Origin: Lepidodermella squamata
Taxonomy: Eukaryota > Animalia > Gastrotricha
Assembly (NCBI GenBank): GCA_047495785.1
Contig: JBLDXI010000024.1
Coordinates: forward strand, 2,356,001 to 2,420,000
Length of the DNA: 64,000 nt
Reading direction: 5' to 3'
The notes under the pieces were generated by a model, which worked only from the letters and a program-made list of their open reading frames with translations, was not told where the DNA came from and did not search any database. Below, one piece after another: positions 1,605 to 56,760 of the stretch (position 1 is the first letter of the stretch; every line of letters begins with the position of its first letter). The position numbers and the translations under genes were made by a program.

Positions 1605-4600
1605 ATGTTTTCACGTGTTAACTGGACCGCCTTGCTTTTCGCATTGGCTAGTCTAATTCATGCTTCACAGCAGGATGGCTTCAAGCGATGTATCTCGCGG
1701 CGGAACGGCGAATTCATGGGCTGCAAACCCGAATGCTCGTTCTTGGATGAAATTCAGGTGATTATCCCAATTGCGCTGAAATTATGTTGAAGTTGAATCA
1801 AATCAAATTTCAGCTTGGACAACCGAGGCCGACTATGGCATCTTGCGTTGCAGGGGTATGGCCTAATCTCCCATTCATATATCAGCAGTGATAATTCTTT
1901 ATTTTGACAGTCGGCGCGAAGCTGTTACAACTTCAAAACGTTTACGCTGAGATGCATGGCCAACGCTGATAAATGTTCGAGCGATGAAGTGCCGGTAACT
2001 TCTCGCAATGTGTCACTGATATGTCTTTTTCACCTTTCTCTAATTCTAGCACCTCCAATTTATCGGCAAGATATTCCGTAACCAATACGAAGCCTGCCGA
2101 GCAAGAGCGGTCAACCTAATGGTTTGTTCGATTACTTCATTTTTCGGCACTCGAGTACAAGTTTTTATTTTGAAGAACAAAGCGGCCAAGCTTTGCCAGG
2201 ATAATTCTGGCAATTCAGTTTGTGTTCCGTTTGATTCTGTCTGTCCTAAGGGAATGGTAAGCCTTTAGACTACCTTTATCCATAAAATAACTCATTTTTT
2301 TTTAACAGAAAGTTGTATCGGGTGCCCAACCGATGGGTAGATGCTTGAGGAAGAAAGGAGGTAACTGAGATGTCTCGCAAATCAGGTCAAATTATAATTT
2401 TTCGATATTTTAGTCGTTATAACAGATTTTCAGCCACACGTGCGCTGTTTCTCCAAATTTGATCGCTCCTTCACCGGCTGTAAACGAAATTCAACCAAAT
2501 GCAACGCTGCTGAAACTGGGGTATAGCTTTCAGCAAGCATTCATTCTTTTATTATTCAATTTATTTATAATTTCCAGGAATACAGCGCTGATACATACGG
2601 CGATAAGGCGCTCTGTTCGAGTGGTGTTGGTTTCACGATCTTTTATCCAAAATCAAAGCCGTCAAATATTTTTCTCCTTTTAGCCTGCTGCTTTGTGCAA
2701 ATCAGCTGCTGGGTACTTGTGCCGCGGTCGGTGCAGTTCAGCGATGACCTCGGTTCGGGATTTTTTTGTCCATTTTCAATCAATTATATAATCCCAACCT
2801 TTTCTAGGTGGCGCAATTTTCCAATAGTACAACATTCGAAACAAATTATGCAGAGTGTCTCAGGTACCTGGCCACCTATGAAGTATGTGTTTGTCCTATT
2901 GAAGCCTTTTCCACGGTAAACTTTAAAAATTCTAGCCGCCTCAATCTTCTGCTGGCCCCCGTCAATGCCGCGTATATTTGCCGTTCGACAGCGATATCAA
3001 CGACCATTCGATTTCTCCGGTACCAACGTTTGGTTTCGGCGATTTCTCCATCGACAACTCAACTTCAGCCCGAGGAAGGGGGTCACTCTACGTGAACGGC
3101 GGCAGAATCGAAATCCCCAACATTATCAGCTACAGCAAGGAGTACTCGATCTGCTTCTTTTACAAGTAAGTTGAGAAATCGCAATCGATGGTTTAACTTT
3201 AATTCTCTTCTAAGGGCTGGTGGCAAGAATGCAGGCGGTCTTTTTTCCAACAGCAACTGCTATGGGACATCGGATTACTCCCTGAAAATTGCGCATGTGG
3301 GATTCGGAGAAAACTCGAGCACGACTTATCAAGTGCTGGCTAACTTGTACCAGCCAAATTTTCCCGTCAACCACGTGTCGTCCGCTGCTTTCGACTCGTC
3401 AACAGGAGAAAATTATACGCAAATTTGCGTGATAGTTTCGGACATAGAAGTCACAATTTGGGAAAACGATGTAATCTCATTTTTCCTATCCTATCTTTTA
3501 TTTTAACTCACGTTACAGAATGAGGCTGGAAACTATGAGACAGAAGGTTCTGTTTTTGTCTCAAACTGCCCCTACCAGATCGGTTCGGTCAATTTCGTCG
3601 GTCATATCGATGAACTTCTTGTGTGTGATTTCACAATGACCCTTAGCGAGATGGATTCTCACTACGCTGGAGCTGTTTCGATGCAAAACGCCGGCCTCAT
3701 CCCGCCTCCTTCGACGCCTCGCCCGCGCTACGATGATACGGACGCTCAAGAAAGCCCGTACAACGCCTGTGGTCACAGCAAATACTGGAATGTCGAAGGA
3801 GATCTGCTGCCGAACGTTGGAATTGTCGGTGGCACGGAATCGGCCGAGAATGAATTTCCGTGGCAGGTTAGACGAGTGCTTCTATTTTGGTAACGTTTGG
3901 TATTTGTTTTTGTTTTCTTTAGGCTCTCGTACTGTTCAAAGTGGAGAATCGAACTCGACCATATAGATGTGGTGGATCTGTCATTAGCGATCGATGGGTT
4001 TTAACGGCGTAAATTTTCCAACCATGTTTAATCCTAGAAATTATCGCCTTATTTTCCAGAGCTCACTGTTGCGTTTCAGAAGAAAGGACTCTGTAAGTGA
4101 TTTCTCTGGCCTAAATTCAATAAATATAATATGCTTTTTGCAGTGAGACTCTGGTGTTGGTTGGCGGCAATGACGGATGGCAAGGCAATCTTACCAAGAC
4201 CCTAGCGCTCTATAGTACAGTGCGAAATACTACTAGGAACATTGTCCACCCTCTTTACAACGATACGATCTGGGCCTACGATTTCTGCCTTTTGGAAACC
4301 GCCGATCCAATTCCGCTAGACAGCTGGGCGATTCGTCCTATCTGCCTGCCGGAAAGTTGCGATGATACCTGTTCCCCTGGTGAGCAGGTGTTGATATCCG
4401 GCTACGGTGCAACTAGCCAGGAAGGTTCCACGACAAAACGCCAGCGTAATGCAATCGTAAATGTCGTTGACAATGCGAAATGTGAGCAGCAATATCGCTA
4501 CAAAAATGGCTCGTTAGACGAATGGCGGGCCTTCTGTGCTGGCATCGATGGCGAAGGCGGCATTGATACATGCCAAGGCGACTCTGGCGGACCTCTCGGC

Positions 4601-4735
4601 TGCTTCAAAAATGGCTACTTCGTTCTTCAGGGCGTGACATCGAACGGTCAGGGTTGTGCCGAGCCGAGATTTGCTGGTGTCTATTCCAACGTCTGCCAGC
4701 TCTTGGATTGGATCAAGAGTTACGTTTCGATCTGA
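1605..4735 (+). CDS. Secreted multidomain trypsin-like serine protease (signal peptide, Cys-rich region, LamG/pentraxin-like domain, S1A protease), multi-exon
   Basis: Exons include 1605-1757, 1814-1855 and 1911-1994. Motifs IVGG, FPWQ, TAAHC (split by an intron), YDFCLL and DTCQGDSGGP are present. A ConA/LamG-like segment runs YLPFD...FVGHIDELLVCD. Confidence 0.88.
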
Positions 4736-5222: not shown

Positions 5223-8200
5223 ATGAAACCTAAATTGATGGGTCATCTGGTAGAAATTGCGTCTTTTCTATGCATTCTCGCAATATTGCTTCACAGTACT
5301 GCCGCACGTTAGTTTCGGAACTAGAATCTGCGGTCAAAACGTTTTTGGATTTATTTCGACAGAACCATTTTCGTGCTCTCCGTCGTGCATCAATGGAAAC
5401 TGTACAGCTACCAACTTTTGTTCATGCAAAATCGGCTGGGATGGGCAATTTTGCGATATAGCAGCTCCTACAGGTAAACAAGTTCACTTCACCTTAAACT
5501 GTCTAGTCTGATTTATAATTTTGACAGTTTGTGAGAGCGACACAAACTGTGCTAACGATGGGATATGTTCTGAGAAGAACTGCTATTGCCCTGGTACCTG
5601 GAATGGTGCTACTTGCGCTGAAACAGGTATGAACACGATTTTTCGATCGAAGACTGGCGATTTTGAACTAAATAGATGCGCATACGTGTCATCAAACCGG
5701 TTTCAATTATCCTTATTGCTTCAATGGAGGAACTTGCAGTGGCACAACTGCAAGGATTTGCGTTTGTACGGCTGATTATACTGGAAAATATTGCCAAACT
5801 GGTAGTTTCGAGGACTATCATTTATTGTCTGTGTGATAAGGTCCGTTTTGAATGTTATAGCGATTGCGACAACAACCACTACAACTACTGTAGCCCCAAC
5901 CACAACATCTACAACAACTACTGCAACAACAACAACATCATCGCTGGCTCCTACGACCACCCAAGCTACAACCACCAGTACGACTCCAATGTCAAGTAAT
6001 GTCTCATGTCAACTTAAATCCTAGTTTACCTGAAGTTGGAAGAGCCATGAGATTTGTTGTGATTTAATCTATTTATTAAAATTGCTGCTTAATTGTTCGA
6101 GAGATTGGGAATGAAGTTATTTTCACACTTAATTTTCGTTGCATAACTATAACTATGCTAATTGATGTTTGATGCTTTCAAGCTACAACCACAGCTGCGC
6201 CGACAACCACAACTCAAACGACTACGACAACGCTACCACCTACGACGACTACCGCAACAACATCCGCTGCAACTCAACCTCCGAGTATGATTTGAATACA
6301 ATTAAGAATTATCCCCTTGGCCACAACAGCACAGGTGTTTCGCGAAGATCTGCGTAACACCTATTTGAATTGCTGAACAGTGTACGAAGTACAGGGTATA
6401 ACGGGGGTACCCTACTCCAGAGGTCCTGGCAAGAAGACAGGAAATAACCACCCTGTGGCACCAACTTTGGGGTCCACAGTATCCCCTAGCTCGCGGATCG
6501 TACTTCGCACACCACTGCTGAAATTACGCCGTCGAATAGAAAATATATATGTTTGTCTCCATAGAATGATTGCTAATCTTTCGCTCTCGCTATTTCGGGT
6601 GAGAAACCAGGAAAGTAACCAAATCCCCGCAAACCGCAGCTTCATCGAAGTCTTCGCCCCTGCTAGCCTAGCCTAGAAAAAATGACCTCAAACCCTTTCT
6701 GAGGTCATCACCCCAAAGTTTTTCAAGCTCTGTGTTAGCGTTGATGTAAAAAGCTTTACCAATTTCATACATAAACACACAAACACCAATTTCATACAAA
6801 ACGTTTACAAAACGTTTACAAACTTTGTAAACGTTTTGTAGCCACAACGACAGCTGCGCCAACGACTACAACAACAACAACCGTGCCTACTTCGACCACA
6901 ACATCACCCGCTACAACGATTACGACAACTACGACTCAGTCCCCGAGTACGACCCGACTTGAAATATTTTTCTGATTTTAACATTGAATTTAAAATTGAA
7001 GCGACGACCAATATACCAACCACGACGACTTTGCCAACGACTACGACAACGTCAACACCCACTACTTCGACATCTTCAACAACACAATCTCAGGGTGATT
7101 TCTCCTTTTTATGAATTGTTTTATCTGGCTTATCTGGGAAATTAGACTTTTCTCTTTTGCACATTTTCAAATAATGACGGCGAACTTCCGGTTAGAGAAT
7201 AAATAGTAGGAGATGCGAAATTCAAGGATACACTGAGTTAAGAGACATCAGGAACCTGCATTTATAACTTCAAACAGAGTTTTCATAATTGTCTATGTTT
7301 TAAAAATTTTAGCTTCGTCCATTGTTGCTCCTACGTCAACAACGACAGCTCTCTCAACTGTCCCAACTTCCACGACCGCGACATCAACAACGTCTACGAC
7401 TGCAACACCAACAACTTCAACCAAGCTCGTGATTAACAATGCGAATTTGAGTGCTAGCACAATGTTCGCCAACCTGAATGCTGTTGTGTTAGCATCCACT
7501 CCATTTTATCTGGCTGCGAACTCTGAAGCCATAAGCACCGCGATGACTGAATGTGCGCAGGCAGTTTTTAAGCGGAATAACTTGACAGCTTTAGCACAAG
7601 ATTCGGTGAGCCCGTCGACATCGAAAAGCGATGATGAAGAACTGTTAATTTTAACAGGCCTCCTTCGTATCGCTAGCATCGATATTGATGTCAAAGATTG
7701 CGAAGTTGGCAGCCTTCATTCCAGCAGTTCGGGTCATCGCAATCGCTTCAGGTTTGATTCTGATAGTTGATTGATATCAGATTGTTGATTCCTATCGCGT
7801 TCCAATAAGCTTTTTCCCAGAATGTCAACTCCGTCCTGTCGGCTACAACGGAAAAAGCAGTGTTACCCCTTATCAAATCACGAGCTTTGTCAATAGAGAC
7901 AATCTCCGTCAAATGCAAAGCTGACGAATTTGTATCAGAAGATTTCGATGCCGAGATTGATTCACAGGTCCAATACTCTAGCAACGAAACTTCGAAGTTG
8001 TTCGCCGATTTTCGACTTATTATGCAGTCATTGATAGTTATGGTTAGAGGTAGCATACCAACTGGGGAAGAGCTTACATTCAACGGAACGTTTTTCTCGT
8101 TTTCGATTCGCAACGTTGCCGCTTCAAAACTTGGCTCGATGGTTATTTTAACAAATCTCGCGACTGCTGAATTTCCGAAAATCAACAACTCCATGGAGCT

Positions 8201-11200
8201 TATCAACTCGATACCCAGCTACATGAACGGAACCAGTGTGATTACGGTGGTTCTAGTGGCCTATATCACCAATGTCTACGATAATTCGAAGCCTTTCAAC
8301 ATGCCAACGATTACATTGAAGATGATTTTTGATGGGAAAGAGTTGACTCTAAACAGCACTAATCCTGTAAAGCTGACCGCTTATCCTCAGCCAAACACGG
8401 CTCAGCAGCTAATTGCTGAGAAAATCAACTCGCAATGCGACGTCAGCACGTTAAAATGTGACTTGGCCTCGAATGCTGACAAATTAGCAACTCTTGCCAC
8501 TTATCCTGTATCATCAGACGCCGGCGATTTCGTTTTGGTTTTCCCAGCCATCGATCTGGACTACATTGTTTACTTCGCTTTCAACGGAACCCCATCAATA
8601 AGGTCCTACATTTGGCTAGTCAATGTGACTGGGGAGGTAGCCGTTACAAGTAACGAACCCATGAGGGTAACTTTCAATAAGTCACTCGGATTGAAGGTAG
8701 TAGTATATAGATCGTCGCTGGTTGATGTATATCGAAATCGCAACCTAACAAATTCGACATTCCCAATGTATGTCATGGCTAGGAAGAATTTAGCCAACTT
8801 CTCACCCAGCGAAAACCTACCGGCATCCGTCTGTGAAATGCAGAAATTTTATGGATATCAAGTCAGGATTGGGTTCGCTTCAGGCGATCAAACTAGTTCG
8901 AGGCGAAAAAGATCGGTTGATGATTCAAATGATGACTTCGACCTTGATTCTGAGTCATCAGAGTCTAAAGTATCGTTTACGTCCCAATACTTCGGAAACT
9001 TTGGAGCCGACCTGCTTATTTCGCCGAATACAATTCAATTCGCTGAAATATTTTCCGATTTTTCAAATTTGGTCTCGAGCAACGCTTTTGTCTTAGCTTT
9101 TATGGTTGCTTGCATGGCTGGATTTTTGGCTTCAGTCACCCTTGCTGCAATTTCCGACCAGAGTGATCTGAAAGACTGGGCTTTCATGCCGATCCTTAGC
9201 AACAAACCCCATCATTCTTATCGGTATCTGGTATCGGTCGATGGTTACAATGTGAAAAGATATGAGCTCGACCCTCAGGTCTTTATCAGACTGATGGGTG
9301 AGGGCTGCGAGACATCTTTCCGGCTTCTTAAAGATGGATTAAGGAGGAATTTTTCTGGGGCTGTTCCGGGGAATTTTCTCCTAACAACAGCTTTCCCAGT
9401 TGAATTTATCGAGGCTATTGAACTGGAGACAGTTAGTAAACCATGGCTTGATGGCACTGAACCTTTCCAGATCTTTATTGACAAGGTTATTATCGTCGAC
9501 TTACAAACCAGTAACAAGTACATCTTCGCTGTTTGCTCGCAAATGCAGTCTGGTGATCGAGTGAAGATCCAACTTGCGACTGAAGATGAGATGAAAGGGT
9601 TCCCGTTCTTGGTCCGGAGCCACTCGCGAACCGGCTTGACGGATAACCATACTTGGATATCTGTCTTCAAACGACCCATGGCCAGTAACTGGACAAGGGC
9701 TGAGCGGCTGTCCTGTGTCACAGCAGCTATTTTTCTAGCAATGCTTGTCAGTTGTATGTTCTACGGCAAGGAGGAAAATTCGCCTCGTATCGGGATCAAC
9801 ATTGGCGGATTCTTGAGAATTTCTTGGTTCACGTTCTACACCAGCCTTGCAGGCTGTTTGATTATCATTCCTCCAACAGCCACCGTAGCTTTCATCTTCC
9901 GAAATGTGAAGCGAAGGTCTGCAGAAAAGAGCGACTATATCACAGTCTTCAATATAGCTGTTGGTCTCGATCAAGAGGGGAAGAAACAATTCCAGCTTCC
10001 CTATTTAACGATATACATCGGCTGGTTTCGTAAGTATCTTGGAATCTTCGATTTTAATCATAATTAAAAAACCTTAGTGGTTACTGTTTCGATTGGCGGG
10101 TCAGCTTTTCTCGTTTTCATGTACAGCCTGCAATGGGGACGGGAGAAGTCGTTGCAGTGGTTAGCCGGTATGGGAATTCACGTAATTCAGGACATAATCA
10201 TCGTGCAAATGGTGAAAGTTGTAATGGTTTCCCTCTTCACCTCCTGTCTCCTTAAATTACCCGACGATGGCATACCAATCGGAAATGTGGTCTACTCAAA
10301 ATGTTAGCTTCTTTTTTATTATGAAGATTTTCTTCATAAAATTCCCTTTCAGGCAATTCTGCGGAAAGGACTGAGATTTTCAAGCGAATGAGAAACACGA
10401 TAGCCGGAATCCTGCAACACATCTGTTACGTAATCATGTTCGCTTTGGTCATCGCATCAACCCAGAGTGCTTATCGTTTCCGCCTTGTTAAAGAAATCTG
10501 ACCTCTCGTCGCTTTCGGAAAAATCCGACAAGTTACAGAGCCTATCACAGATTACGGGGCTATTTTCGATTGGCTGGGCGGTAAAGTGATACCAAACTTT
10601 CTGAACGGAAATCAGCTGAATTATGGCGGAATTTTCAACTCGAAGAACATTTACGCCGTGCCGAACCATGACGTAGTCATACTGGGGCCAATCAGGATTC
10701 GGCAGCAGAGAGTTGCGTTGAAATCCTGTCCTATCTATCAAGCTATTGACCTAACCAACGTCAATCGTTACATAGGAAATCTAGGAATTTCCAATATGAC
10801 ATGCCAAGACCTTTATTCCGATGATATGGGAGTAGGATCGTCATCGGAGAGACGAAATTTCAACTCGAGCTGGCTCATTCTTTCAAACCTAACCATAAAT
10901 GATTCGAAAACATCTCTTGAAGTATACCCGTGGCTCTATAGAGTTGACCAAGGCGGTTTTGTATACTGCGGGTGGTCCGCGAGATACAAACCAGGGGGTT
11001 ATTACGTCGACCTGCCTTCAAAAATGTGGAAATCTCAGTTGCTAGTATCGCAGATGAAAGGGAAACGTTGGCTAGATAACGCAACATCAGTCGTTTTCGT
11101 CGATTTCGTTCTTTACAACGCTCAGATTAACCTATTCCTCGCAGTCAAGATAGTCTTTGAGGCTATGAGTTCCGGAGCAATGAATTACCACAGTCGGGTC

Positions 11201-12431
11201 TATCCACTACAGTTGTACCTTTACTCCGGGGCGAGCAGTATCCTTACCTTTCTGGTTCAAGGTGTTTGGATCCTCTTATTGATATCAGAAACCGTGAAAA
11301 TTGCGTATCAAATCAAGAGAAATGGTTTCAAGGCCCATTTTACGGACGGCTGGAATATTCTAGAGATCATCTCCATCGTCGCGGCCTATTGTATCATTGG
11401 CCTCTTTATCACTCGAATCCTGATTTGCATTGAGGTGGTTACAAAAATTCAGACTGATCGGAGTTCCTTTACTGATCTTGACCCTCTCGTATTTTGGGAC
11501 GAACTGATGGCTAACATTATTGGGCTAACTTTCTACATGACTTTGCTGTTGTTCTTCCGAAATCTCAAGTTCCTGAAGCATTGGTGTACCTTCCTAGGCA
11601 CTATGTCGAAAGGAAAGAATGATCTGATAACTTTCACCGTGGTTTTCGCCGTCATTACTCTGATGTTTGCCGGGCTAGGTTACTTGACCATGGGGAATGT
11701 TCGAACTGAGTTTCGGTCAATAACAGCTTCGATAATGACCCTGATTCAGAATATCATCGGAGTCACTGGGAGTTTGATAGCACTAGGCGTCCAGTCTCGT
11801 TTTGTTATGATCTACTGCATTGCTTACTCGACGATCGTGATGTTTCTTGCTGTTCAAGTTTTCATGACAATTGTTACGGTAACCTACGATCGAGTTGCGT
11901 CGAACGTCGAGCGAAACACAGACTGGGACAGGGAGATGGCTGAGTACATGGCAGAGGAATGTCTCAAGCTGATCTCACCGAAGAACACGAATGAGAACCG
12001 CGACGAAAGGACAATAGATGGAGATGGACCTTTTTCTGAATGTAACTTCTTTTTCCCCCAAAATTTTCTAACTATCCCCAATTTTGTTTATAGTGGAATG
12101 CGCTCTTCTCCGACTGGAAAGATACGTTGAGGCAATCGTAGAAAACGGCTACATTTTTGAAGAGAATAAACGGGTTAAATGCTCTATTCGCTGGATGGAA
12201 CAAAACTATCGCCCAACTACAGATGATGCAGAAAGCGTGTGGTATGATGCCTGCTCGGATCCAGCCGTATTGAGTCAAGCACCAGGCGGCCGCCGCCGGC
12301 CACTTAAGATTCAAGAAGTCAAACCGTTGTTTCCGGTTAAACTCGAGCAACCTGGTGGAATGTACTACAACTTTTTCAAACGGTTTAATGAACATGAAAT
12401 TTCGAAGACCGATCAGAACTATATGAAATAA
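5223..12431 (+). CDS. Polycystin-1-like (PKD1L) protein: signal peptide, 3 EGF repeats, Thr-rich mucin stalk, GAIN-like region, PLAT domain, multi-TM polycystin channel domain; in-frame TGA at 10499
   Basis: Signal peptide MKPKLMGHLVEIASFLCILAILL; EGF exons 5363-5800; Thr-rich exons 5850-7420; PLAT-like YRYLVSV..VFIRLMGEG; DNHTWISVF..WTRAERLSC motif; LGPIRIRQQRV and WLDNATSVVFVDFVLYNAQINLF polycystin-channel motifs. Confidence 0.88.
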
Positions 12432-12784
12432 GCTGTCGTTGATTTAGATAACTTTTCGTTAAGTTTGCCTGTTCAAGTCTCTGTTTTATGGTGACAAGCC
12501 TAATTTTGTGGAAAAACTGAACCTTGAAAAATTGTCAATAGCATAAAGTGTATTGGGTAGATTTATTTAGATCAGGTTTTAGTCGGCCGTTAAGCTTATT
12601 GTCACAAAATCGAGATGAACTAGAAACCAATGCACAATAGTCCTTTTCCAATAATGATGTGAATCAGGCTCGTGCCAGGTGCGAGATAATGGATTATTGC
12701 TGCGCATTGAACACGCCGCTTCTAAATCTTGTTGCAGCGAACCCCATCGGCATCTACATTCAATATATTTTTTGAGTAAGAATT

Positions 12785-15700
12785 ATGGCGTCCGTTTTTC
12801 ACCTGTTTGCTGTCCTTTTCGCTGTCAACAATCACCTGAATTGTTTCGTGAACGCTGATTTCAGGCGATGCATCTCGCGATTGAATGATCAGTTCATGGA
12901 CTGCAAAGCTACGTGTTCCGTTTTAGATGAAATTCAGGTGACTTTACAAAATTAATGAATAATACATTATTCATCTCTGATTATGATTTAGTTGGGAGGC
13001 AAGCGGCCGACCTACGCCTCTTGTAGTTCCGGGGTAAGAAGTTTATCTTTCAATGCTCCATATCTAAGTCCATGTACTGTCTACAGTCTGCGCGAAGCTG
13101 TTTCAATTTCAAGAAATTTTCTATGAGGTGCATAGCCATCTTTTTTCATTCTGAAGAGCACATCATCTTTTTTCATTCTGAAGAGCACATCATCTTTTTT
13201 CATTCTGAAGAGCACGAGTATTTTTTCGTTATTTTTTTCAACCTTAACTCTTATTTTTACAGCACCGCCGGAAAAATAACATACTGGCACTGAGCCAGCA
13301 TTCTATTTCCCCCAATTCACTAACTTATACGCCTTTTTTCCTAATCAACCAAGCCGGGCCTAACCTAGCTTGCCCCTACTCTTTACCAACATGATGGATG
13401 ACGACGGCGAGTCATCCGACTCTGACTCTATCCTTTTCCAGGATGAGGATGAAATGATTGATTTCATCCGATGCATTATTTCCGGTGGTTCTCTAGCCTC
13501 GATTCCTGAGGAATATCAACCTCTAAGAAAGCAGTTCGCCAACATTACGACGTCGAGTCCGAATCTCGAGGAAGCGCTACAAGCTCATGCTCAATACATC
13601 ATTGACTCCACCCCAGACGGTGCGACTCTGAGGAGCAAATGGTATGCGTTGACCCAATCTCAACAGTACTTCTACCTGGTATTAATAAGTGATGGCCACC
13701 GAGCTAAATTAGGCGGCGCGGTTGGACTTAGCGAGCTCGCTAGACTATGCGTCTTGCATGTCATGCCTGAGCTAGAAAGTAACCTAGTGTCTATTTTTAA
13801 TAATATGTCACCCTCAACCGCCGGCCGGCCGTCTACCAAAGGCCTAAAAGTGGCGTTCTCAGCCACCACTGGTCAGCAGCCCAGCCGCCAGCAGGTCCAC
13901 CATCGCCAAATGACATCTCAGTCAACCCCATCGAAGTGGTCGAGGCAACCGGCACAGCAAAAGCAAGTCAACGAGCTATCCGAGCGCGAGATCAACATCC
14001 AAAAATCGCGCGAATCTCGGGTGATCCATCTGGACAACTTACCGCGCGACCTAAGCACCGAGGCTGCCGAGAAAGAATTCTCGCGAATCTTCCCCCAAAT
14101 CAAAATCGAGCTAGCTCAGGGTCTGGGCCGCGGCGGCGTGCGAATTGTATGCCGAACCGAGCAGGACGCTGAACGCCTTCTCAAGCCTGAAACCTGGCCG
14201 GCTGGCGCCCTAGGAGGCAAACTCAGGGTTCATCGATCTCGCCGCTACTACGAGCTTTTTCCGAACAAGAAGGTGGATCAAGCACCCGACCACATTGGCC
14301 GCAAGATCTCGAGCCAAGAAATCGCGGAACGTGACGGCAGAGCTGCGCTGTGCACCAACTACCCTGCATGGTACCCAATCACTGATTTGAAGCGCGACTG
14401 GAGCGACAAGCTTGAAGACGCCATTCCTACTCGCGCTGATCTAAAGGACCCGAGGCTAAAAGTCATTTTTATTTTCAAAGAAGCCCAAGTAGCCAGAGAT
14501 TTCGCAGATGGAAAACTCGAACTGCAATCACGTGCTCTTAGAGGCCGCTTGATGCGTCCAGATCCTCCTGTGCCGCGATGTGGCAAATGCCAGTCATTCG
14601 ACCATTTGGACCGCGACTGCAAGGCCAATGTTCTAATTTGCGCTCACTGTGCCGGCAAACATGACTACGAAGACTGCGAGACCAAGACAGACGAAAGCAC
14701 TCGATTCTGCGCGAACTGTAACGAGTCGGGTCACACCGCTGCTTACCGCAAGTGCCCGGCCTATATTGCAGCAAGGGAATCTAATCGCGAAAAGATCCGC
14801 CAACGCATTGCATCGATCACGCACAGGGCACCTCAGCAATGGCAACCAGCTCCACAGCCGTTCAATCAGTGGTCACGCGGACAGCCTAAACTGAGAAGTG
14901 AGCTCAACGTTAACGATCTAATTGAACAGGTATGCCCTATAGTAATCAGCCAAGTCGAACAAAATCTCAAAAAAATGCTTGAAGTCAACAATAACAATCT
15001 GATCGCGTTGCTTCGTCAAAATCAAAATCAATTAGCATGGTCGTGATAATTCAGTGGAACTCCAGAGGGCTGAAAACTCGAAAATATGAATTGATTAAAC
15101 TAGCTCGTGATTTAGGCGCAGATATTATTCTCATCAACGAATCGCATTTCTTTCGAGGTATAGATTTCGATCTCCCAGGCTATCAACTTTTTACGAACGA
15201 GCGTGTAAACCAGGTAATGAATGACTCCGCTACGTACGGCGGAGTGGCGATTTTTGTTAAGAACAATATTACTATCACTAATGAATTTTATGAGTACAAT
15301 ACGCCCCATAGTGAGTGGCTCGCCGTTACCATCGTAAACAAATCGGGACAAAAATTGATAATAGGCACTGGCTACGCGTCGCCAGGAAAAAATGACTTAG
15401 ACGTTACCTTTCTCGATCAAATTTTATTTTCCGATAGCCCATGTATTTTCGGTGGTGACATGAACGCGTGGCACTCTGATTTGTTAACCGGCCCGCCTCC
15501 GTCTAACATGTACGGCAGGATCCTATCTGAATTCATGCGTTCGTGTAATGTCACTCTACTTTGCGACGGAACGCCCACCCATTTCTCTCATAGCGGCGTA
15601 GGGCGGCAAATAGACATTTGGCTCTCAAATGACGCCGCTCGCTCCATGGTCTCGCAAAACGCAACAGTTGAAGACTTCTATGGCAGCGATCACTGTGCGA

Positions 15701-18700
15701 CGAGACTGGACATTAAATTCTTCACAACCCCCTGCCAACCAAAAACTAGTACAGACTCAATTCGAATCAATTTCAAGGCTATGAACTGGCCGCGATACCG
15801 CGACGTTGTGGATTCTGCACTGGATGAACGCGTCGAGCGACTCAGGCCGAAAGCAGGTGACCCCGTTAGCTCGATCGGCAAATACGTAGCAGAGTTCACC
15901 AACACAGTCCTTCAGGTCACCGATGAGATCGCGCCGAAATGTCAAGCCAGCAAGTTGCCCACGTTTAGCATGAACGCAGAAATCGGAACTCTGCTGGACC
16001 AGCGAAACCAACTCCAGCGGCTACACTCTAGTACCAATTCGGCCATGGTAAAATCAGAAGTTAATCGCCTCAGTCGGGACATTAAACGCCTGATTGGACT
16101 CGAGCAGGCCAAGGAATGTGAGAGGAATTTGCGTCTTATGGCGCAACGTTTCAGAGAGCAGCAACAGCAAAGTCAGGCAGCCTGGCGCTTGCTCGCGGCA
16201 CAGCTCAACCGCACCAAGCGGCAGAGGAAGCTAGGAGCGCTTGTAGATAAAAGATCTGGAGCCACAGTTATCGAGGACAAGGCGAAAGCCGAGCTGCTTG
16301 CTGCCTCATTCGGGAAAGTCGTCAGTGGCGCCCCTCGCACGTCCAAGCGCCCGGAAGACATTGCATTCTGGCAAAAAACCGAAAGTGACGTGGCGGCTGA
16401 TCCACTGATGAAGCCGCTCGACAAGGTTCCCAATGCTCTCCCCATCTCGATATCACGTCTCCAGATGCGAGCCTTGCTGCGTCGGCTTAAAAACAAAGCT
16501 CCCGGTCACGATAATGTCCTGAATGTCCTCATAAAAAACGGTGGCTCCACGTTTCGGAGTCATCTGAAGTTCATCTTTGAGCTATGCCTTGCCACTGGCT
16601 ACATGCCTGCAGGTTGGAAAATCGCGATCGTCGTGCCCGTACTAAAGGAAGGAAAGGATAGCCGTTTGGCGGATTCATACCGCCCAATCTCTTTACTACC
16701 AGCCTTCAGCAAGTTACTGGAGCTACTCGTCACCCTGTTGCTGCTGGAATACCTCGACCAAAAGCGTCTGCTACCCGATCATCAATACGGTTTTCGCCGC
16801 CTACGTGGTGCTGTGGACCCGCTGTTTCGCCTAATTAGCGACGCAGCCCTGGCTATGGCCAACCATAGCAAGCTGATAGCCGTATTTCTAGATTTCCGTG
16901 CCGCTTTCGATACAGTCTGGCACGCCGCCTTGTTGCAGAAGCTCAAGGATTCTGGAGCCCCCGAGCCAATTGTGCGCTGGGTGGCGAACTTCCTCAGCGA
17001 CAGAAGTTTTCAAGTCCGGGTCGGCGACGACCTGAGCGAGCCCCAGGAAATCAAATGCGGTGTCCCTCAGGGAAGCCCTTTGAGCCCGCTTCTATTCATT
17101 TTCTACTGCGCAGATATGCAGCCCCTGAGAGTAAACCCCGACGACGGTCGAAAAATCGTGGGCACCGGCACTTATGCCGATGACGCTGCAAACTGGGCAT
17201 GGGGGCCCCATTATGAGCAATGTGTTTCGCGGCTTCAGTCTCGCTTACGTTCCACAGAGACCTGGTGTGCTAGATGGCGACTTGACCTCAACCCGACAAA
17301 GTGTGAGTGTATTATAATCGGTCATCATGGCGCCTCCTCCCCCTCCGTCCTATTGTCTATTGGTGGTGTGCGAATCCCGCAAGTGAAAGAGGTTAAGTAC
17401 CTCGGAATCACATTGACTTCGAAACTCTCGTGGGAGAGTCATCTTGATCGGCTATCAGCGAAAATCAAACCCCGAGCTGCATGCTTACGCGGCATCGCCG
17501 CACGAAAAGTTGTCCCTAGTGACCTCTGTGTTCGTTTTAACAAAGTCCTCATCGAAAGTGTCCTTACCTACGGCTCACCAGCCTGGTATTGTCTACCCAA
17601 GTCGTCCGAGCTACGTCTGTTCGGCTTCCAGGCCCACGGCTTGAAAGCTGCATTGGATCTGCCTATCGAGTGCGACCCTTTCGGTGTTGTCGTCGAAGCT
17701 GGCGTGGAAGCAATCAGCGACGTATTTAAGCATCAACTGATGCGGTACGCCATCAGGTGCCTCAACGCAAACAACGGGATGAAGGATTATATATCCTACG
17801 TTGCCAGCTTCCAGCCTGACGCCTTCGGCCTTCGAATGCTGGAGAAGCACTGTCCAGCATGGCACTTGCGTGACTGCGTTAGTGCCCCGGCTAAGCCCTG
17901 CCGCCTCATCACCGACATTTTCCCTAAAAACTAATGTGAGCCTGTGGTTTCCTGTATTCCTTTAGGTGCCCTTGCGATCCTCGCCCTTCTGAGCCCCTCT
18001 CGAGCCAGCCCGATTAATATGTAAGCTTACCGTTTAATAAATTGATCTCTGCCTTGCCTTACAGAGCCCTGAGCCTGAGCCTGAGTCGTCATGAGCCTGA
18101 CCTTGAGCCTTGAGCCTTTCGGAACCTGAGCCTTGTCTGATGAGCTGGAATGGCTGCCTGTAAGCCCTTAATTATTGCCGTTAACCACCTTCGATAATTT
18201 TTCAGCCCTACTCAATTTGCGCAACGAGCCCGAACCCTCGATCGACTTTTCTACCTTTCTTCAAAAACGCACAAAAAGCCAACAAAAATCGACAAAAACT
18301 AAAATACAAAAATAAAATAATAACATAAAACTCGAAATTATGAACTGCCTATGATAATGTACAATCTATAAATGCTACGAGCCCTAGATAGCATGGGGGC
18401 AATATATTTTCATGCTCTAATGTCATTCATATGTGCCTATAGCGCCGGCCGGCGGAGGGCCTATATAAATAAAACTACGACATGCTATGCTCCATATCTA
18501 AGTCCATGTACTGTCTACAGTCTGCGCGAAGCTGTTTCAATTTCAAGAAATTTTCTATGAGGTGCATAGCCAATGGCGATCGTTGCTCGACCGATGAGCT
18601 GCCGGTAAAAACTTTGGCGATTTTTTAATGGATTAAACCTTTTTTCTGATATTTATGTTACAGCACCTCAGATTTTTAGGCCATCAATTCGGTAATCGGT

Positions 18701-21338
18701 ATGAAGCCTGTCGTAATGCAACGTTGACTTTTAAGGTTTGATCTTTGCCAGTCTTTTAAAAATATGAGAAATTATCGCTAAATAGAGTCGGCCGGCAAAC
18801 CTGTGTCAAGATAAATCAGGCAATGTCGCCTGCTTCCCGATTGGCATTGGGTGTAGATCTGGCAGATGGGTAACCATTTTTATACTGAAATAACCAAATT
18901 ATACATTCATTTTTTAGAAATACGTAAAGACGATCAACACCATGGCTACATGCCTTGAGGATATCGGCGGTAATACAGACGGCACAATGGCGTTTCCCTT
19001 GAATTTCTATTTTAAATCTTTTTCAGCTCCAACCAATGAATCCGTGCCTCATATACGCTGCTTCTCCATGTACGACCGCGCTTTTATCGATTGCCAAGGA
19101 AACCAAACCCAATGTGGTAGTGGCCAAACTTCGGTAAGACCCTCGCCAGCTGCCTCATTAATTATTAGTATTAATTTTTTTATTTTTCAAGGAATATAGC
19201 CAGGGTGTCTACGTTGACAGGGGGCATTGTTTGAAAGGCGTTAGTTTTGTTAACATAAACTATGTTAAAATCTCAATTTTCTAAATTTAGCCTGCAGGAT
19301 TGTGCAAGTCGACAGTTGGGTATCTATGTTCTGGACGGTGCGAATCACCTAATACCTTGGTAAAATTAGCATTTTCAAATTCAACTTGAGGCTGTCATCT
19401 GTTATTTCCAGGTTGCCCAATTTTCGTCAAGTCGAAATTTCAGCCTGAATTACGCTGCCTGTCTCAAATACCTCGCGAGCTTCAAGGTCAGCGATAATGG
19501 TTTTGGGAAACTTATTCCTACATTTTCCACCCAGCAACCTCAACCGACTGCTGGGCCCCGTCAATGCCGCGTGTATTTGCCATTCAACAGCGACATCAAA
19601 GATCACTCGATTTCTCCAGTATCGACATTTGGTTACGGGAATTTCTCTATCGACAACTCAACTTCAGCCCGAGGAAAAGCTTCACTCTACGTGAACGGTG
19701 GCAGAATCGAAATTCCCAACATCACAAGCTACGGCAAGGAGTACTCGATCTGCTTCTTCTACAAGTATGTTAACAAACGATAATTAACCTATGTGGTATA
19801 TTTACTTTTTTAAGGGCTAATGGCAAGAATGCAAGCGATCTTTTTTCCAACAGCAACTGCTATGGAACATCGGAGTATTCCCTGAAAATTTCGCATTTGG
19901 GATTCAACAGAAAATCGAACCCGACTTATCAAGTGCTAGCCAACTTGTACCAACCGGCGTATCGCGTCAACTATTCGACTGCCGCTGACGTCCAGACGGC
20001 AACAGGAGAAAGTTATATCCAAATTTGCGTGATTTTTGCTGACGGAGCTGTTACTATATGGGAAAATGATGTAATTTTAAAACATTTATCTCAATTTTTT
20101 AATTTTAAAATGGTGCAATTTACAGTACGTGGCTGGAAGCTATGCGAAAAATGGCTCTGCTTTTGTGTCTAATTGTCCTTACCAGATTGGTTCGGCCAAT
20201 TTTGTTGGCCATATCGATGAAGTTCTTGTCTGCGATTTCGCGATGATTTTTGACGAGATCGATGCTCACTATGCTGGAGCTGTTTCGATGCAAAACGCCG
20301 GCCTTATCCCGCCTCCTTTGACGCCTCGCCCGCGCTACAACGAAACACAGCCACAACCTAGTCCTTACAACGTCTGCGGCCACAGCAAATACTGGAACGT
20401 CGACGAAGATCTGCTGCCGAGTGTTGGCATTGTCGGTGGCACGGAATCGGCCGAAAACGAATTTCCATGGCAGGTGAGGCTGGTACTTTTTCCGTAATGC
20501 TTCATAATTCGTCTGGTTCTTTGCTAGGCTCTCATGATACTCAGACTCGTAAAAGGCTCGTCGATCTACACATGCGGTGCAGTTGTCATCAGTGAACGAT
20601 GGGTTATGACGGCGTAATTTTTCCAAATATCTCAAATCCTTCTGATAGATTTTTACTTCCAGAGGCCACTGCTGCTATTCAACTGCAGCCATCAAGTTAG
20701 CCGGGTTTTTTTACGTGATTTCCAATAATGAAGTACTATTTTACAGGGAAACACTGGTCCTGGTCGGCGGAAATTATGGATGGCAGGGCTCACTTAACAA
20801 GACCCTCGCACGTTACAAAACGGTGCGAAAGACAGTTCGAAACGTCATTCACCCTCTGTATGACGATGCCACAACCGCTTACGATATCTGCCTTATGGAA
20901 TTGTCGGAGCTGATTCCACTCGACAGCTGGGCTATTCAGCCCATGTGCCTGCCGAGCACCTGTGCTGATACATGTTCAACTGGCGAGATGGTTTTGATAT
21001 CCGGCTATGGTGCAACAAGCCAGGAAGGCGATTCGCCAAAACGCCAGCTTAATGCAATCGTGAAAGTCGTTGACAATGCGAAATGTGAGCAGCGGTATGG
21101 CTATAAAAATGGCACGTTAGCAAACAGAAAGGCGTTTTGCGCTGGTTTCGATGGCGAGGGCAGTATCGATACGTGCAGTGGTGATTCTGGCGGGCCCCTC
21201 GGCTGCTTCAAAAATGGCTATTTCGTGCTTCAGGGACTAACCTCGACTGGCAAAGGATGTGCTGAACCGAGATATCCTGGCATCTATTGCAACGTTTGCC
21301 AGCTCATGGACTGGATTAGAAGTTACATTCCACTTTGA
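12785..21338 (+). CDS. Trypsin-like serine protease paralog 2, interrupted by a LINE at intron 2/exon 3
   Basis: Exons 12785-12937, 12992-13033, 18521-18604 and onward are colinear with the 1605-4735 gene. The triad is intact (TAAHC, YDICL, DTCSGDSGGP). Confidence 0.85.
13139..13215 (+). repeat. ~2.9 tandem copies of 27-bp unit TCTTTTTTCATTCTGAAGAGCACATCA at the LINE 5' end
   Basis: Read directly. Each unit contains an Inr-like TCATTC. Confidence 0.9.
13391..15046 (+). CDS. LINE ORF1: gag-like nucleic-acid-binding protein, RRM-like segments and 3 CCHC zinc knuckles
   Basis: CGKCQSFDHLDRDC, CAHCAGKHDYEDC, CANCNESGHTAAYRKC. First ATG at 13391. Confidence 0.92.
   Translation: MMDDDGESSDSDSILFQDEDEMIDFIRCIISGGSLASIPEEYQPLRKQFANITTSSPNLEEALQAHAQYIIDSTPDGATLRSKWYALTQSQQYFYLVLISDGHRAKLGGAVGLSELARLCVLHVMPELESNLVSIFNNMSPSTAGRPSTKGLKVAFSATTGQQPSRQQVHHRQMTSQSTPSKWSRQPAQQKQVNELSEREINIQKSRESRVIHLDNLPRDLSTEAAEKEFSRIFPQIKIELAQGLGRGGVRIVCRTEQDAERLLKPETWPAGALGGKLRVHRSRRYYELFPNKKVDQAPDHIGRKISSQEIAERDGRAALCTNYPAWYPITDLKRDWSDKLEDAIPTRADLKDPRLKVIFIFKEAQVARDFADGKLELQSRALRGRLMRPDPPVPRCGKCQSFDHLDRDCKANVLICAHCAGKHDYEDCETKTDESTRFCANCNESGHTAAYRKCPAYIAARESNREKIRQRIASITHRAPQQWQPAPQPFNQWSRGQPKLRSELNVNDLIEQVCPIVISQVEQNLKKMLEVNNNNLIALLRQNQNQLAWS
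15037..17934 (+). CDS. LINE ORF2: APE endonuclease plus reverse transcriptase, no evident RNase H
   Basis: APE motifs QWNSRGL, LINES, GGVAIFVK, GGDMNA, GSDH. RT motifs KAPGHD, YRPISLL, QYGFR, LDFRAAFDTV, GVPQGSPLSP, YADD, YLGI. Overlaps ORF1 by 10 nt. Confidence 0.96.
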   Translation: MVVIIQWNSRGLKTRKYELIKLARDLGADIILINESHFFRGIDFDLPGYQLFTNERVNQVMNDSATYGGVAIFVKNNITITNEFYEYNTPHSEWLAVTIVNKSGQKLIIGTGYASPGKNDLDVTFLDQILFSDSPCIFGGDMNAWHSDLLTGPPPSNMYGRILSEFMRSCNVTLLCDGTPTHFSHSGVGRQIDIWLSNDAARSMVSQNATVEDFYGSDHCATRLDIKFFTTPCQPKTSTDSIRINFKAMNWPRYRDVVDSALDERVERLRPKAGDPVSSIGKYVAEFTNTVLQVTDEIAPKCQASKLPTFSMNAEIGTLLDQRNQLQRLHSSTNSAMVKSEVNRLSRDIKRLIGLEQAKECERNLRLMAQRFREQQQQSQAAWRLLAAQLNRTKRQRKLGALVDKRSGATVIEDKAKAELLAASFGKVVSGAPRTSKRPEDIAFWQKTESDVAADPLMKPLDKVPNALPISISRLQMRALLRRLKNKAPGHDNVLNVLIKNGGSTFRSHLKFIFELCLATGYMPAGWKIAIVVPVLKEGKDSRLADSYRPISLLPAFSKLLELLVTLLLLEYLDQKRLLPDHQYGFRRLRGAVDPLFRLISDAALAMANHSKLIAVFLDFRAAFDTVWHAALLQKLKDSGAPEPIVRWVANFLSDRSFQVRVGDDLSEPQEIKCGVPQGSPLSPLLFIFYCADMQPLRVNPDDGRKIVGTGTYADDAANWAWGPHYEQCVSRLQSRLRSTETWCARWRLDLNPTKCECIIIGHHGASSPSVLLSIGGVRIPQVKEVKYLGITLTSKLSWESHLDRLSAKIKPRAACLRGIAARKVVPSDLCVRFNKVLIESVLTYGSPAWYCLPKSSELRLFGFQAHGLKAALDLPIECDPFGVVVEAGVEAISDVFKHQLMRYAIRCLNANNGMKDYISYVASFQPDAFGLRMLEKHCPAWHLRDCVSAPAKPCRLITDIFPKN

Positions 21339-29476: not shown

Positions 29477-30418
29477 TCACTTGAAGGTGTTAGCATATTT
29501 CGCCATTAAATACTCGCCCGAAACCACTGGTGCGTATTTGGCCGGGTTGTCCTCCGACTGGCATGTAGGCAAGCATTCGACAACCGTATCAAAATTAGGA
29601 TCCAAGAAAAACGGAATCGAGTACCGCTCCGATTCCGAAACATTAACAACCCGATGAACGGTACTCTGATAAATGCCATTCGTCCAACGCTCCAGCATAT
29701 CGCCTATATTGATGATGAAACCATGGCCGATTTCATCGAACGGCTGAACAGTCACCCATTCATTCCTATTTTTCGGCCAAACCTGAAGACCTGGGACGGT
29801 ATCGGTCGATAGAACGGTTAACATGCCGTAGTCGGAGTGAGCCCCAGCCCCGAAAATGCCCTTTTCCGGTTCAGATTTTTCGGCCGAGTAGTGTAGTAGC
29901 CGGGCGAGTTGGACAGGCTTCGTGAAGAATTTATCGAAATAGGTCTCTTCAAGCCCAAGCGATAAGGCGAATAGCCGTAATAGGCGATAGCACAGCCGGT
30001 TAACCTCCTCGTAGTATTCAATCATGGTCTGGCGAAATTCAGGAATCAGACCCTCGGCCGGCCAGATGTTAGGGCTGAAAAACGCAGCGATTTCCTCACC
30101 CTCCGCCAGCTCGATACCGATTGAAAACGACTCCTTTAAATCGCCTTTTGTCTGGTGTTTCGGGTCGAGAGTTTGAGCTTCAAAAGTGCTGTAGCCGCGG
30201 TCGGTCAAGCCGTCGTCCTTACGAAGAGCAAGTTTCTGCGCCTCGGATAGTTGGAACAGGGTTTTGGCCTTTTGAAACGTTCTTTTCACTAGATCTTTCG
30301 AAATTCCAGTGTTGACGACGAAGAAGAAACCTTCGTTGATACAGGCGGCATGGATAGCTTTAGCGATTGTATCTTTGTCCAAGCTGAGATCGATGACAGG
30401 AAGGCCGCGATTTTCCAT
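29477..30418 (-). CDS. Intronless 2-oxoglutarate/Fe(II) dioxygenase (DIOX_N plus 2OG-FeII_Oxy, isopenicillin-N-synthase-like family)
   Basis: LPVIDL..AC..GFF.V.N.G, PNIWP, GAGAHSDYG (HxD), STVHRV (distal His), RYSIPFF (RxS). Confidence 0.93.
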   Translation of the reverse strand: MENRGLPVIDLSLDKDTIAKAIHAACINEGFFFVVNTGISKDLVKRTFQKAKTLFQLSEAQKLALRKDDGLTDRGYSTFEAQTLDPKHQTKGDLKESFSIGIELAEGEEIAAFFSPNIWPAEGLIPEFRQTMIEYYEEVNRLCYRLLRLFALSLGLEETYFDKFFTKPVQLARLLHYSAEKSEPEKGIFGAGAHSDYGMLTVLSTDTVPGLQVWPKNRNEWVTVQPFDEIGHGFIINIGDMLERWTNGIYQSTVHRVVNVSESERYSIPFFLDPNFDTVVECLPTCQSEDNPAKYAPVVSGEYLMAKYANTFK

Positions 30419-35653: not shown

Positions 35654-36228
35654 GGGTCGTTATATTCCTGCTTAAATAAGTACGCGTTTTTTGATATTCA
35701 TACTTAAATAAGTACGCATTTTTTGATATTCGTACTTAAATAAGTACGCGTTATTTGATATTCGTACTTAAGTGGCTTTCCGCTTACGTAATATTCGAAA
35801 TTTTTCGACCATAATATTCAGCTTTTAAAACTGAGTAAGAATCATATCTCACCCAGGAAGCTGAGATAACTTGGACTTGTCAAATTTGATGGCAAAATCT
35901 GGAGTTTCTTCCTATTTTCATAAAGTTGGATCTAAGGTTCAGGACCTTTCAGGTTTCCTGAGCTTTCCAACCCTAATTTCATGTTTTTGGATGCAAATTT
36001 GACAAGTCCAAGTTACCTCAGCTTCCTGGGTGAGATATGATTCTTACTCAGTTTTAAAAGCTGAATATTATGGTCGAAAAATTTCGAATATTACGTAAGC
36101 GGAAAGCCACTTAAGTACGAATATCAAATAACGCGTACTTATTTAAGTACGAATATCAAATAACGCGTACTTATTTAAGTATGAATATCAAAAAACGCGT
36201 ACTTATTTAAGTACGAATATCCACTCCG
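35654..36228. mobile_element. Foldback/Mutator-like MITE: ~225-bp near-perfect inverted arms with 31-bp subrepeats, 9-bp TSD ATTATTAAT
   Basis: Arms about 35662-35888 and 35994-36220, spacer 105 bp. ATTATTAAT at 35645-35653 and 36229-36237. Confidence 0.88.
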
Positions 36229-54549: not shown

Positions 54550-56760
54550 ATGCGGCAACCGACGAGATTATTTGTAAAATTAGCTCTTCCGGTTGTTATT
54601 CTCCTCGTTTTGATCGCTGCTGACCTTCTCAACCAAGATAGATTGGGCAAATGGATAGAACAGGCGTCAGCTTCTTTGGAATTTCCAGAATCAGCGCTGT
54701 TGCCATGCGCAAGGCTGCCGACATTCGAGGCGCGGAACGAGACGTGGAAAATCCCTAGAATTCTGCATCAGTCGTGGAAAAACGAGACCCTGCCCGAGCT
54801 CTACGCAAGGTTCCGCCAGACGTGGCTCGACATGCACCCCGACTGGCAGCATCACCTGTGGACGGACGAGGAGAACCGGTTGTTGGTCCAGTGCCACTAC
54901 CCGTGGCTGTTGCCGTACTACGACGCGTTCCCGGTCGGAGTTCAACGGGCTGATATCAGCCGGTTGTTGTACGTGCACCACTACGGCGGCATCTACTCGG
55001 ATCTGGACACGGAGCCAATGAAAACCATGGACTCGCTGTTGAGCAATTATTCGGATCAGCGCATACTTTTAAGTGGGTTTCTATTCATTTATCATGTTGA
55101 AAAGAGGGGTGAGATCGAACATCGAACATTATAGAGACGATTGAAATGGCGAAAATGCCTGCGATTGAATATGGACAAAACGATATAGAAGCGTCGAAAA
55201 TAGGGGTCAAAAATGTAACTGACGACTTGGCGAGTGTAAAAATTCAGTTTTTTTCAATTTCACTCACCCATTATCGAAAAGCCAAGTTGCCCTAGTTAGC
55301 CACCATCGAGCCTAAAACGTTTCCCCATAAAAACAAGAAATCACAATCCATTTGAGAATCCATTGAAACAACCAATCGTTTTCCTTGAAACTATAATTTC
55401 TACTATACATTTTTATACCCATTTTTTTCACTCAAAACCTGTGAGCATCCAATTCATTTATTTTATATTTTATTTTATTTCAAATTTAGCTCTGCTCTGG
55501 ATTTCTATAATATGATGCTAATCTGCCCGGAATAATGCAAAATTCATATCATTCTAAAAGGTGATTTTCGTGTGCAAACCTTGGTCGTCGTTAGTCATTT
55601 GCGTATCACCTGAGGCGACAATTCAGAATTTGTAGTAATTAATTTTAATTAATACAACGTAACGCAACAAAGATATTACACGGAAACAGGTCTAAAATGA
55701 GAGACGTAACATCTCATGGCCAGAAAAATTTGAAAAATCATGAGAATAGAAAAAATTCCGGATAAATTTGGTCCAACCGGGTAAAATACCGATAATTACC
55801 GAACCAGTTACCATCGGGGTGTTCTCCGGTAAGTCTGTTATTTCTTCGGTTAAATCGCGGATGAAAGACGGAACTATCTCTCGGTTTGATTTTTTTAAAT
55901 TATAGTTGAATTTCCTATAAAAAGTTGCTCAACTTCTGGGACACGCTGTATGAACATGCGATTTTAAACTGAAAAAAAAAGATTGACAATTTTCAGCAGC
56001 TTTTTTTTGACCACCGAGCTCCATGTGATGCAATTTCTAATAATGGTAATCGTCAGATTTTCAGAATTCGAAAATCCTGGAATTTTTTTTGAAATTTTCA
56101 AAATCACTCAGAAAAAAATTCAGATTTTTCGAAAAATTTCTTTATGATATTATACTAAAAGAATGCAAATTTTGCGATTTTTGTTTAATAGGCTACATGA
56201 GCAAAAGCTACCATATGGAAGACAACGTACAAGCGGCTTGGATGGCGTCAGCGCCCGGGCACCAAATCTGGCTTCTCACCGTGCTGAAAAGTACTTTACT
56301 CAGTCAAAGTCTGCCGAAATCCACACGGTGAAAAGAATAAAAAAAATTGCTAAAAAACCCGAATTTTAAGCTACTTGATTTATTCAGCCCCGATTACGTC
56401 ACCGGACCTGCAGTTCTATGGGTGGCTCTGGGCGACTATTGGCGCATGTGGAGAGCGAAAATGAGTGGGCCGAAAATTGCTGGAAATATCGTGCTGAAAG
56501 GTGCGAGGAAAATTCGAGACATTTACATGTTGGAGCCAGGCATCATATTTCCTTACCACTCGTACGAAAATGAGAAGCCGATTGGCAAAATTTGCGATCC
56601 TCATAAAGCGACGTTCAACACAACGGCGTGCAAGGCAAGTTTCCCCAACGCCTACGTCATTCAGTACTCTGGCTATTCGTGGCAGAAGGACTGGGAAGGA
56701 TTCCTCAACGCCAACGGCTTCAAGAAAGAAACGTTGTACTTCGAACTGAAAGAAAATTAG
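54550..56760 (+). CDS. GT32 glycosyltransferase (SUR1/CSH1 MIPC-synthase/OCH1-like mannosyltransferase), paralog 1, 3 exons
   Basis: TM anchor; KIPRILHQSWK, LWTD, RADISR, GGIYSDLD (DxD), MAS.PGH, TGP. Exons about 54550-55072, 56192-56327 and 56388-56760. Confidence 0.88.

Follow-up and report, generated by a model that had tools for sequence, protein, structure and literature searches.

Long interspersed nuclear elements (LINEs) usually leave target-site duplications (TSDs) of 5-30 bp. R9 belongs to the R2-like group, encodes a restriction-like endonuclease (RLE), inserts at a single site in the 28S ribosomal DNA (rDNA) and has a fixed 126-bp TSD. Two reports describe R9 of bdelloid rotifers, citing Gladyshev and Arkhipova (2009), as an rDNA-specific LINE with a TSD of this length (PMC2861651, PMC9977147), and de novo insertions of Dualen LINEs in Chlamydomonas had TSDs longer than that of R9 (PMC9977147). 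For L1, TSDs above 100 bp made up less than 10% of the events in HeLa cells, while in excision-repair-deficient cells the median was 1.5 kb; the authors propose a distant second nick for long TSDs and note that exons can be duplicated (PMC5223499). Splicing may also remove DNA inserted in an exon. Evelknievel, in exon 13 of Arabidopsis CMT1, is spliced out and 25% of the splice events restore the frame (PMC6238269), and with a duplicated-exon construct, 6-16% of the mRNA showed splicing of a new intron (PMC3265369, Hellsten et al. 2011). Here we analyze 64,000 nucleotides from the gastrotrich Lepidodermella squamata (contig JBLDXI010000024.1, positions 2,356,001 to 2,420,000; the window), in which a full-length LINE interrupts exon 3 of a protease gene and is flanked on both sides by identical copies of an 86-bp stretch of that gene. 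We consider it probable that this is a young APE-type insertion (apurinic/apyrimidinic endonuclease, APE) with a long TSD, that it mainly disrupts the gene, and that it is tolerated through its youth and the redundancy of the gene.

The element in the protease gene resembles R9 in being a non-LTR retrotransposon (LTR, long terminal repeat) with a TSD many times the usual length. However, its endonuclease is of the APE type and its target is a protein-coding exon, and thus it is not an R9-type element. With the long-TSD L1 insertions of cultured human cells it shares the APE-type machinery and, apparently, a distant second-strand break, but those were somatic culture events, enriched in repair-deficient cells, whereas the present one is a germline copy in an invertebrate and has no poly(A) tail. 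Dualen insertions are likewise flanked by long target duplications; Dualen, however, has both an RLE and an APE, while APE alone was detected here. Like Evelknievel, the LINE is an exonic retroelement that could be removed via splice sites involving the TSD, the intact mRNA being found in a minority of the Evelknievel transcripts. Evelknievel, however, belongs to the LTR elements, its TSD has 5 bp and its splice sites come partly from the element ends, whereas here the TSD carries the whole native acceptor and the LINE adds none. The birth of introns by segmental duplication (PMC3265369) is similar in that duplicated splice signals let the spliceosome remove the intervening DNA and restore the frame. 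It differs in that a tandem exon duplication containing AGGT makes both sites, while in the protease gene an existing intron would be enlarged and a nearer, identical acceptor competes. Long LINE TSDs are already documented for R9, for L1 in culture and for Dualen, and the initial annotation of this locus, which called them rare, was correct for L1 in normal cells and needs qualification in view of such cases (PMC5223499, PMC9977147).

The 86-bp duplication and its junctions

The two TSD copies (13053..13138 and 18487..18572, neither assigned to a strand) are identical at 86 of 86 positions. They form the longest direct repeat in 12000-20000 according to a repeat search, which detected no inverted repeats in that region. 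Each copy takes in 34 nt at the end of intron 2 (53 nt long) and 52 nt at the beginning of exon 3 of the host gene. The LINE between them (13139..18486, 5,348 bp, + strand, sense relative to the host gene) is delimited by its open reading frames (ORFs), by Pfam matches to APE and RVT_1, and by a 3' end common to nine further contigs with differing flanks. It has no terminal repeats of its own, and the TSD copies, made of host intron and exon sequence, are its sole flanking direct repeat. Pattern searches and a repeat search over the whole window detected a third, diverged copy (63% identity) at 1877-1962, in an uninterrupted tandem paralog of the protease gene (1605..4735, + strand). This paralog was recognized by repeat search, gene model and alignment, and was used as a proxy for the empty site.

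Alignment of the paralog (1836-2010) through both junctions shows the 86-bp stretch only once, at 1877-1962. On the left, the match to the paralog extends over exon 2, the intron and the part of exon 3 that ends in ...GCCA, after which LINE sequence begins; on the right, it extends from the late intron through the complete exon 3 and its donor. In addition, a contig from a related organism (X3, roughly 92-97% alike) reads GGTAAGGATTTTCTCTTTCAATG..., which corresponds to a diverged donor and intron at 13033-13060 followed directly by 18495-18608; it is an unoccupied homologous site. Because the uninterrupted paralog and the contig of the relative both carry the stretch once, the repeat is a TSD, as the initial annotation had proposed, the comparison being one with a paralog and a relative and not with an empty allele of the same locus in the same strain. 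The identification of the insert as a LINE was equally sound, since ORF2 encodes an APE and a reverse transcriptase (RT) and ORF1 is gag-like. The earlier coordinates of the repeat and the layout of introns and exons stood, while the start codon had to be placed at 12785-12787 and the LINE at 13139-18486.

At the 5' junction, the target and the first 27-bp unit of the LINE share CA, a 2-nt microhomology of a type that LINEs frequently show at this end. On the 3' side, the LINE end ...ACATGCT meets the TSD start ATGCT, which creates a tandem pentamer, and A18487 is also present after the LINE end in other copies; the boundaries of the LINE are uncertain by 1-2 nt at the junctions. In the unoccupied target, both TSD edges fall within a pentamer CA|ATG (13051-13055; 13137-13138 plus 18573-18575). 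A symmetric endonuclease site behind CA|ATG at the two edges was considered and rejected, as the motif has the same orientation at both.

We propose target-primed reverse transcription as the route by which the LINE entered exon 3, 52 nt from the start of the exon. The bottom strand would have been nicked at 13052/13053 and the top strand broken 86 nt downstream, at 13138/13139, where the 3' end of the cDNA would have been joined via the CA microhomology. Fill-in of the two 86-nt gaps would then have generated the TSD. These nick positions and this order of events are a reconstruction from the LINE, the TSD and the single-copy state elsewhere. It is possible, though rather doubtful, that the 86-bp stagger did not come from the LINE endonuclease, the second break being a pre-existing nick or a replication or repair intermediate in a host that lacks or limits a factor keeping the second nick close. 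Such an origin is suggested by the top-strand break, GCCA^ATGG, which is unlike the bottom-strand nick, GCAT^TGAA, and by human cells without nucleotide excision repair, in which L1 TSDs reach hundreds or thousands of bp (PMC5223499). However, a single event cannot reveal the maker of the second break, and a break of this kind would alter the mechanism of the stagger and not the identity of the locus.

Coding content and age of the retrotransposon

The 5' end of the LINE consists of three tandem 27-bp units (CATCTTTTTTCATTCTGAAGAGCACAT; 13137..13217, + strand), found by repeat and pattern searches. Each unit holds the heptamer TCATTCT, which by analogy with known internal promoters of LINEs may be an initiator-like motif. 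In the 5' untranslated region (UTR) a 45-nt unit read from the sequence, GTATTT...CCTTAAC...TTTTTACAG (13218..13262, + strand), looks like one of the local mini-introns or like a strong, possibly trans-, splice acceptor, 128 nt ahead of the ORF1 start. An intron or acceptor retained within a retrotransposon would be unusual.

ORF1 (13391..15046, + strand) encodes 551 aa from its ATG. Its translation has three CCHC-type zinc knuckles near the C-terminus (CGKCQSFDHLDRDC, CAHCAGKHDYEDC and CANCNESGHTAAYRKC), with a weak Pfam match to zf-CCHC (E 0.059). A gag-like ORF1 with CCHC knuckles is typical of clades like Jockey, I and CR1, and is not found in all LINEs. ORF2 (15037..17934, + strand, 965 aa) overlaps ORF1 by 10 nt in a different frame. 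Its N-terminal part matches the endonuclease family PF03372 (E 9e-13, residues 5-219) as well as PF14529, and residues 539-793 match the reverse transcriptase family PF00078 (E 1e-31), with YADD visible in the translation. This RT also matches those of the solved structures of R2 and of L1 ORF2p. The closest database protein in a word search is an unnamed metagenomic ORF with 39% identity, and the atlas neighbours of ORF2 are clusters of arthropod-type endonuclease-RT proteins. An exact look-up of ORF2 in public assemblies returned no record, and none of the 45 pattern hits in a metagenome scan for relatives was confirmed. No RLE downstream of the RT and no 28S rDNA target were found for this LINE; it has an N-terminal APE, and its target is the protease exon.

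The 3' UTR (17935..18486, + strand, 552 nt) was delimited by reading the sequence and searching for AATAAA. It ends in ...ACATGCT, without a poly(A) tail. Sense AATAAA signals occur at 18036, 18311 and 18468, the last one 13 nt before the LINE end. The predicted fold of the LINE 3' end was no more stable than those of shuffled sequences.

The window contains no second copy of the LINE, but Logan contigs revealed other members of the family. Eight contigs of run X1 and one of X4 agree with the window as far as 18487/18488, beyond which their flanks differ; this places the LINE 3' end where the initial annotation had set it, give or take A18487. In X1 the contig depth, which is not a copy number, is about 120-180 over 13148-15300, 900-1,570 over 17128-17923 and about 3,000 over 18322-18520; this rise toward the 3' end is as expected of many 5'-truncated copies. 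Over the 5' two-thirds of the LINE, the long X1 contigs show 17 differences from the window copy in about 2,900 positions (about 0.6%), and therefore several near-identical full-length copies exist. As X1 differs from the window at many LINE positions, it confirms neither the window copy nor its junctions. That the insertion is very recent is indicated by the lack of differences between the TSD copies, by the open ORFs and by an identity of about 99.4% among full-length copies.

Two identical acceptors in the interrupted gene

The TSD holds a CTAAG motif about 20 nt before the AG, the acceptor CTACAG and 52 nt of exon 3. Introns and exons are so tiny in this gene that 86 nt take in an entire 3' splice site, with branch-like CTAAG, tract and CTACAG, as well as the start of the exon. 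The locus now has a pair of identical acceptors, with the whole of exon 3 behind the distal one alone. Exon 2 (12992..13033, 42 nt, + strand), taken from the gene model and equal in size to that of the paralog, ends in phase 0. It is followed by intron 2 (13034..13086, 53 nt, + strand; GTAAGA...CTAAG...CTACAG), whose acceptor is the proximal one; the paralog has an intron of 55 nt at the same position. In its intact state exon 3 would consist of 13087-13138 joined to 18573-18604 (84 nt, + strand), and exon 3 of the paralog also has 84 nt. The initial annotation had stated that a complete exon 3 with its acceptor was rebuilt behind the LINE at 18521..18604 (84 nt, + strand), and the sequence, the repeat identity, the paralog and the translation all agree with this: the exon reads open over its 28 codons, and the donor GTAAAA comes directly after it at 18605. 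Donor 13034 and acceptor 18520 are intact, and the splice signals are positioned for a removal that restores the frame, as joining 13033 to 18521 would restore that of the protein. Use of the first acceptor leads instead to ...CIAIFFHSEEHIIFFHSEEHIIFFHSEEHEYFF... and a stop at 13292-13294. The frames foreseen for both products were reproduced by translation. Donors in the partial exon copy (GT at 13100 and 13128) that might splice in frame to 18521 were rejected, since they leave 13 and 41 nt, neither of which is in frame.

Since the two acceptors are identical, position alone differs. The proximal acceptor is 53 nt from the donor, the distal one 5,487 nt, and the former is transcribed 5.4 kb ahead of the latter. 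In genes with short introns, splicing proceeds by pairing across the intron and is largely co-transcriptional, so that the near site is favoured. From these features we expect the proximal acceptor to be the main partner of donor 13034, and distal splicing to give at most a minor product. The sense AATAAA of the LINE may also cause host transcripts to be cleaved 34 nt before the distal acceptor, and the acceptor-like site at 13262 looks like a third competitor ahead of it. This choice of splice site is our reading of the splice-signal content and the frames.

A transcript spliced at the proximal acceptor would enter the sense LINE, where translation would stop, and would probably be cleaved at one of the AATAAA signals of the LINE or degraded. 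The allele would then owe its tolerance to its recent origin (it may even still be polymorphic) and to the redundancy of the protease family, and not to self-repair. Redundancy and youth are sufficient explanations of its existence. Most likely the insertion has recently turned one of several redundant protease genes into a null or weak allele, and as it stands we regard the finding as a young insertion that disrupts such a gene. If there is no rescue at all, the locus still provides a clearly defined germline example of a long TSD at an APE-type LINE.

The initial annotation had suggested that the distal acceptor is used efficiently, so that the LINE and the partial exon copy are removed as a 5.5-kb intron, normal protease is made, and long TSDs render exonic insertions harmless. 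We regard this as unlikely. The distal acceptor is indeed complete, native-identical over -34 to +52, and followed by a full exon and a donor, and an open frame can still be drawn through every exon downstream. Exonic retroelements that are spliced out (PMC6238269) and duplications that create usable introns (PMC3265369) provide precedents, although the restoring isoform was a minority in them. However, transcription reaches an identical acceptor, 53 nt from the donor, 5.4 kb before it reaches the distal one. The twelve or so local introns measure 45-59 nt, and three sense AATAAA and the other acceptor-like site precede the distal acceptor. The intact downstream exons are uninformative on selection, since the insertion is too young (TSD 86/86). 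In a search of sequencing runs none on record as RNA was found to contain the host gene, and no exon 2-exon 3 joint, 13033-18521 included, was seen in the contigs compared with the locus, a comparison of contigs alone. Run X2, guessed to be RNA, has a paralog-like exon 3 which departs from the window at 13113/18547, and is not the host gene.

Several points weigh against a mainly disrupted gene or against the site as assembled. That the proximal acceptor would be preferred is expected from what is generally known of intron definition and of splicing during transcription, and not from data on Lepidodermella squamata. The proximal exon copy has no donor downstream, whereas the distal copy is a complete exon, and if exon definition matters here the distal site would be favoured. 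The TSD length of 86 bp is known from one copy of the LINE family. Finally, among the Logan contigs no read or contig was seen to bridge 13138/13139 or 18486/18487, so that the assembly of the site is without independent support, as is heterozygosity. The missing bridges, and the many LINE positions at which X1, the run that matches best, differs and so leaves the window copy unconfirmed, would also be compatible with an assembly artefact, e.g. filled and empty haplotypes stitched together around an insertion whose true TSD is of ordinary short length. Nevertheless, stitching is not expected to place two perfect 86-bp copies exactly at the ends of a full-length LINE. The 3' end lies at the usual terminus of the family, and genuine LINE insertions typically show a microhomology like the one at the 5' junction. 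We therefore hold an artefact to be very improbable.

A broader proposal is that in this compact genome LINE TSDs are often tens to thousands of bp long, and that a TSD spanning a splice site turns an exon hit, at birth, into an insertion in an enlarged intron. Sufficiently frequent use of the distal acceptor would leave the gene partly functional and the proximal copy would then decay, which would provide a regular route for the survival of exon hits and for intron growth. We consider this quite unlikely. If the distal acceptor is used, the locus would be a natural one-step case of an exon hit turned intron. It would also offer a clean in vivo contest in which two 3' splice sites of the same sequence compete for one donor, at distances of 53 nt and 5.5 kb, in an organism with introns of about 50 nt.

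The host gene, its paralog and other features of the window

The host gene encodes a secreted trypsin-like protease on the + strand and is a member of a tandem family. Exon 1 (12785..12937, 153 nt, + strand), with its start codon at 12785-12787 and a signal-peptide-like N-terminus, was defined from the sequence, the gene model and the equal-sized exon of the paralog, and is separated from exon 2 by intron 1 (12938-12991, 54 nt, + strand) of the gene model. The remainder of the gene (18605..21338, + strand) is compatible with an open frame up to the stop at 21336-21338, in a gene model that is approximate mid-gene. The last exon (20748-21335) has a Pfam Trypsin match (E 1e-34) and the motif GDSGGP.

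The first three exons of the paralog (1605-1757, 1814-1855 and 1911-1994) measure 153, 42 and 84 nt, and its introns 56, 55 and 55 nt. The exact agreement of the exon sizes supports the model of host exons 1-3. The paralog has an open path to a full protease and is a possible back-up gene. Both genes (1605-4735 and 12785-21338) encode large secreted proteases in which the N-terminal exons are rich in cysteine and the trypsin domain is at the C-terminus, and their DNA is roughly 72-88% alike over the repeat segments found. In both, AATAAA is located 150-170 nt after the stop. Cost-based exon chaining was right for exons 1-6 in comparison with the paralog, except at the boundary of intron 2 and exon 3, where it chose 13086-13135 and not 13034-13086. 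Exon chains optimized for reach or for the number of introns gave wrong models and were discarded.

Other features were found in the window. Upstream of the host gene, long ACN-rich (Thr-rich) imperfect repeats at 5874-7410 resemble a mucin-type coding stretch. They precede an ORF at 7860-10067 without a Pfam hit and a polycystin-like ORF at 10586-12130. An intron-less gene on the - strand (29480-30418) encodes a 2OG-Fe(II) dioxygenase of 313 aa, whose named relatives are from green algae and land plants (44-50% identity) and whose best unnamed match has 62%; the gene may have come into this animal genome from a foreign source. At 35676-36221, a 32-nt unit (TTAAGTACG...ATATC...) forms arrays in both orientations, about 400 bp apart, which may be the ends of a small DNA transposon. 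The stretch 54684-61677 consists of three units in tandem, each about 2.2-3.1 kb long and 76-88% alike.

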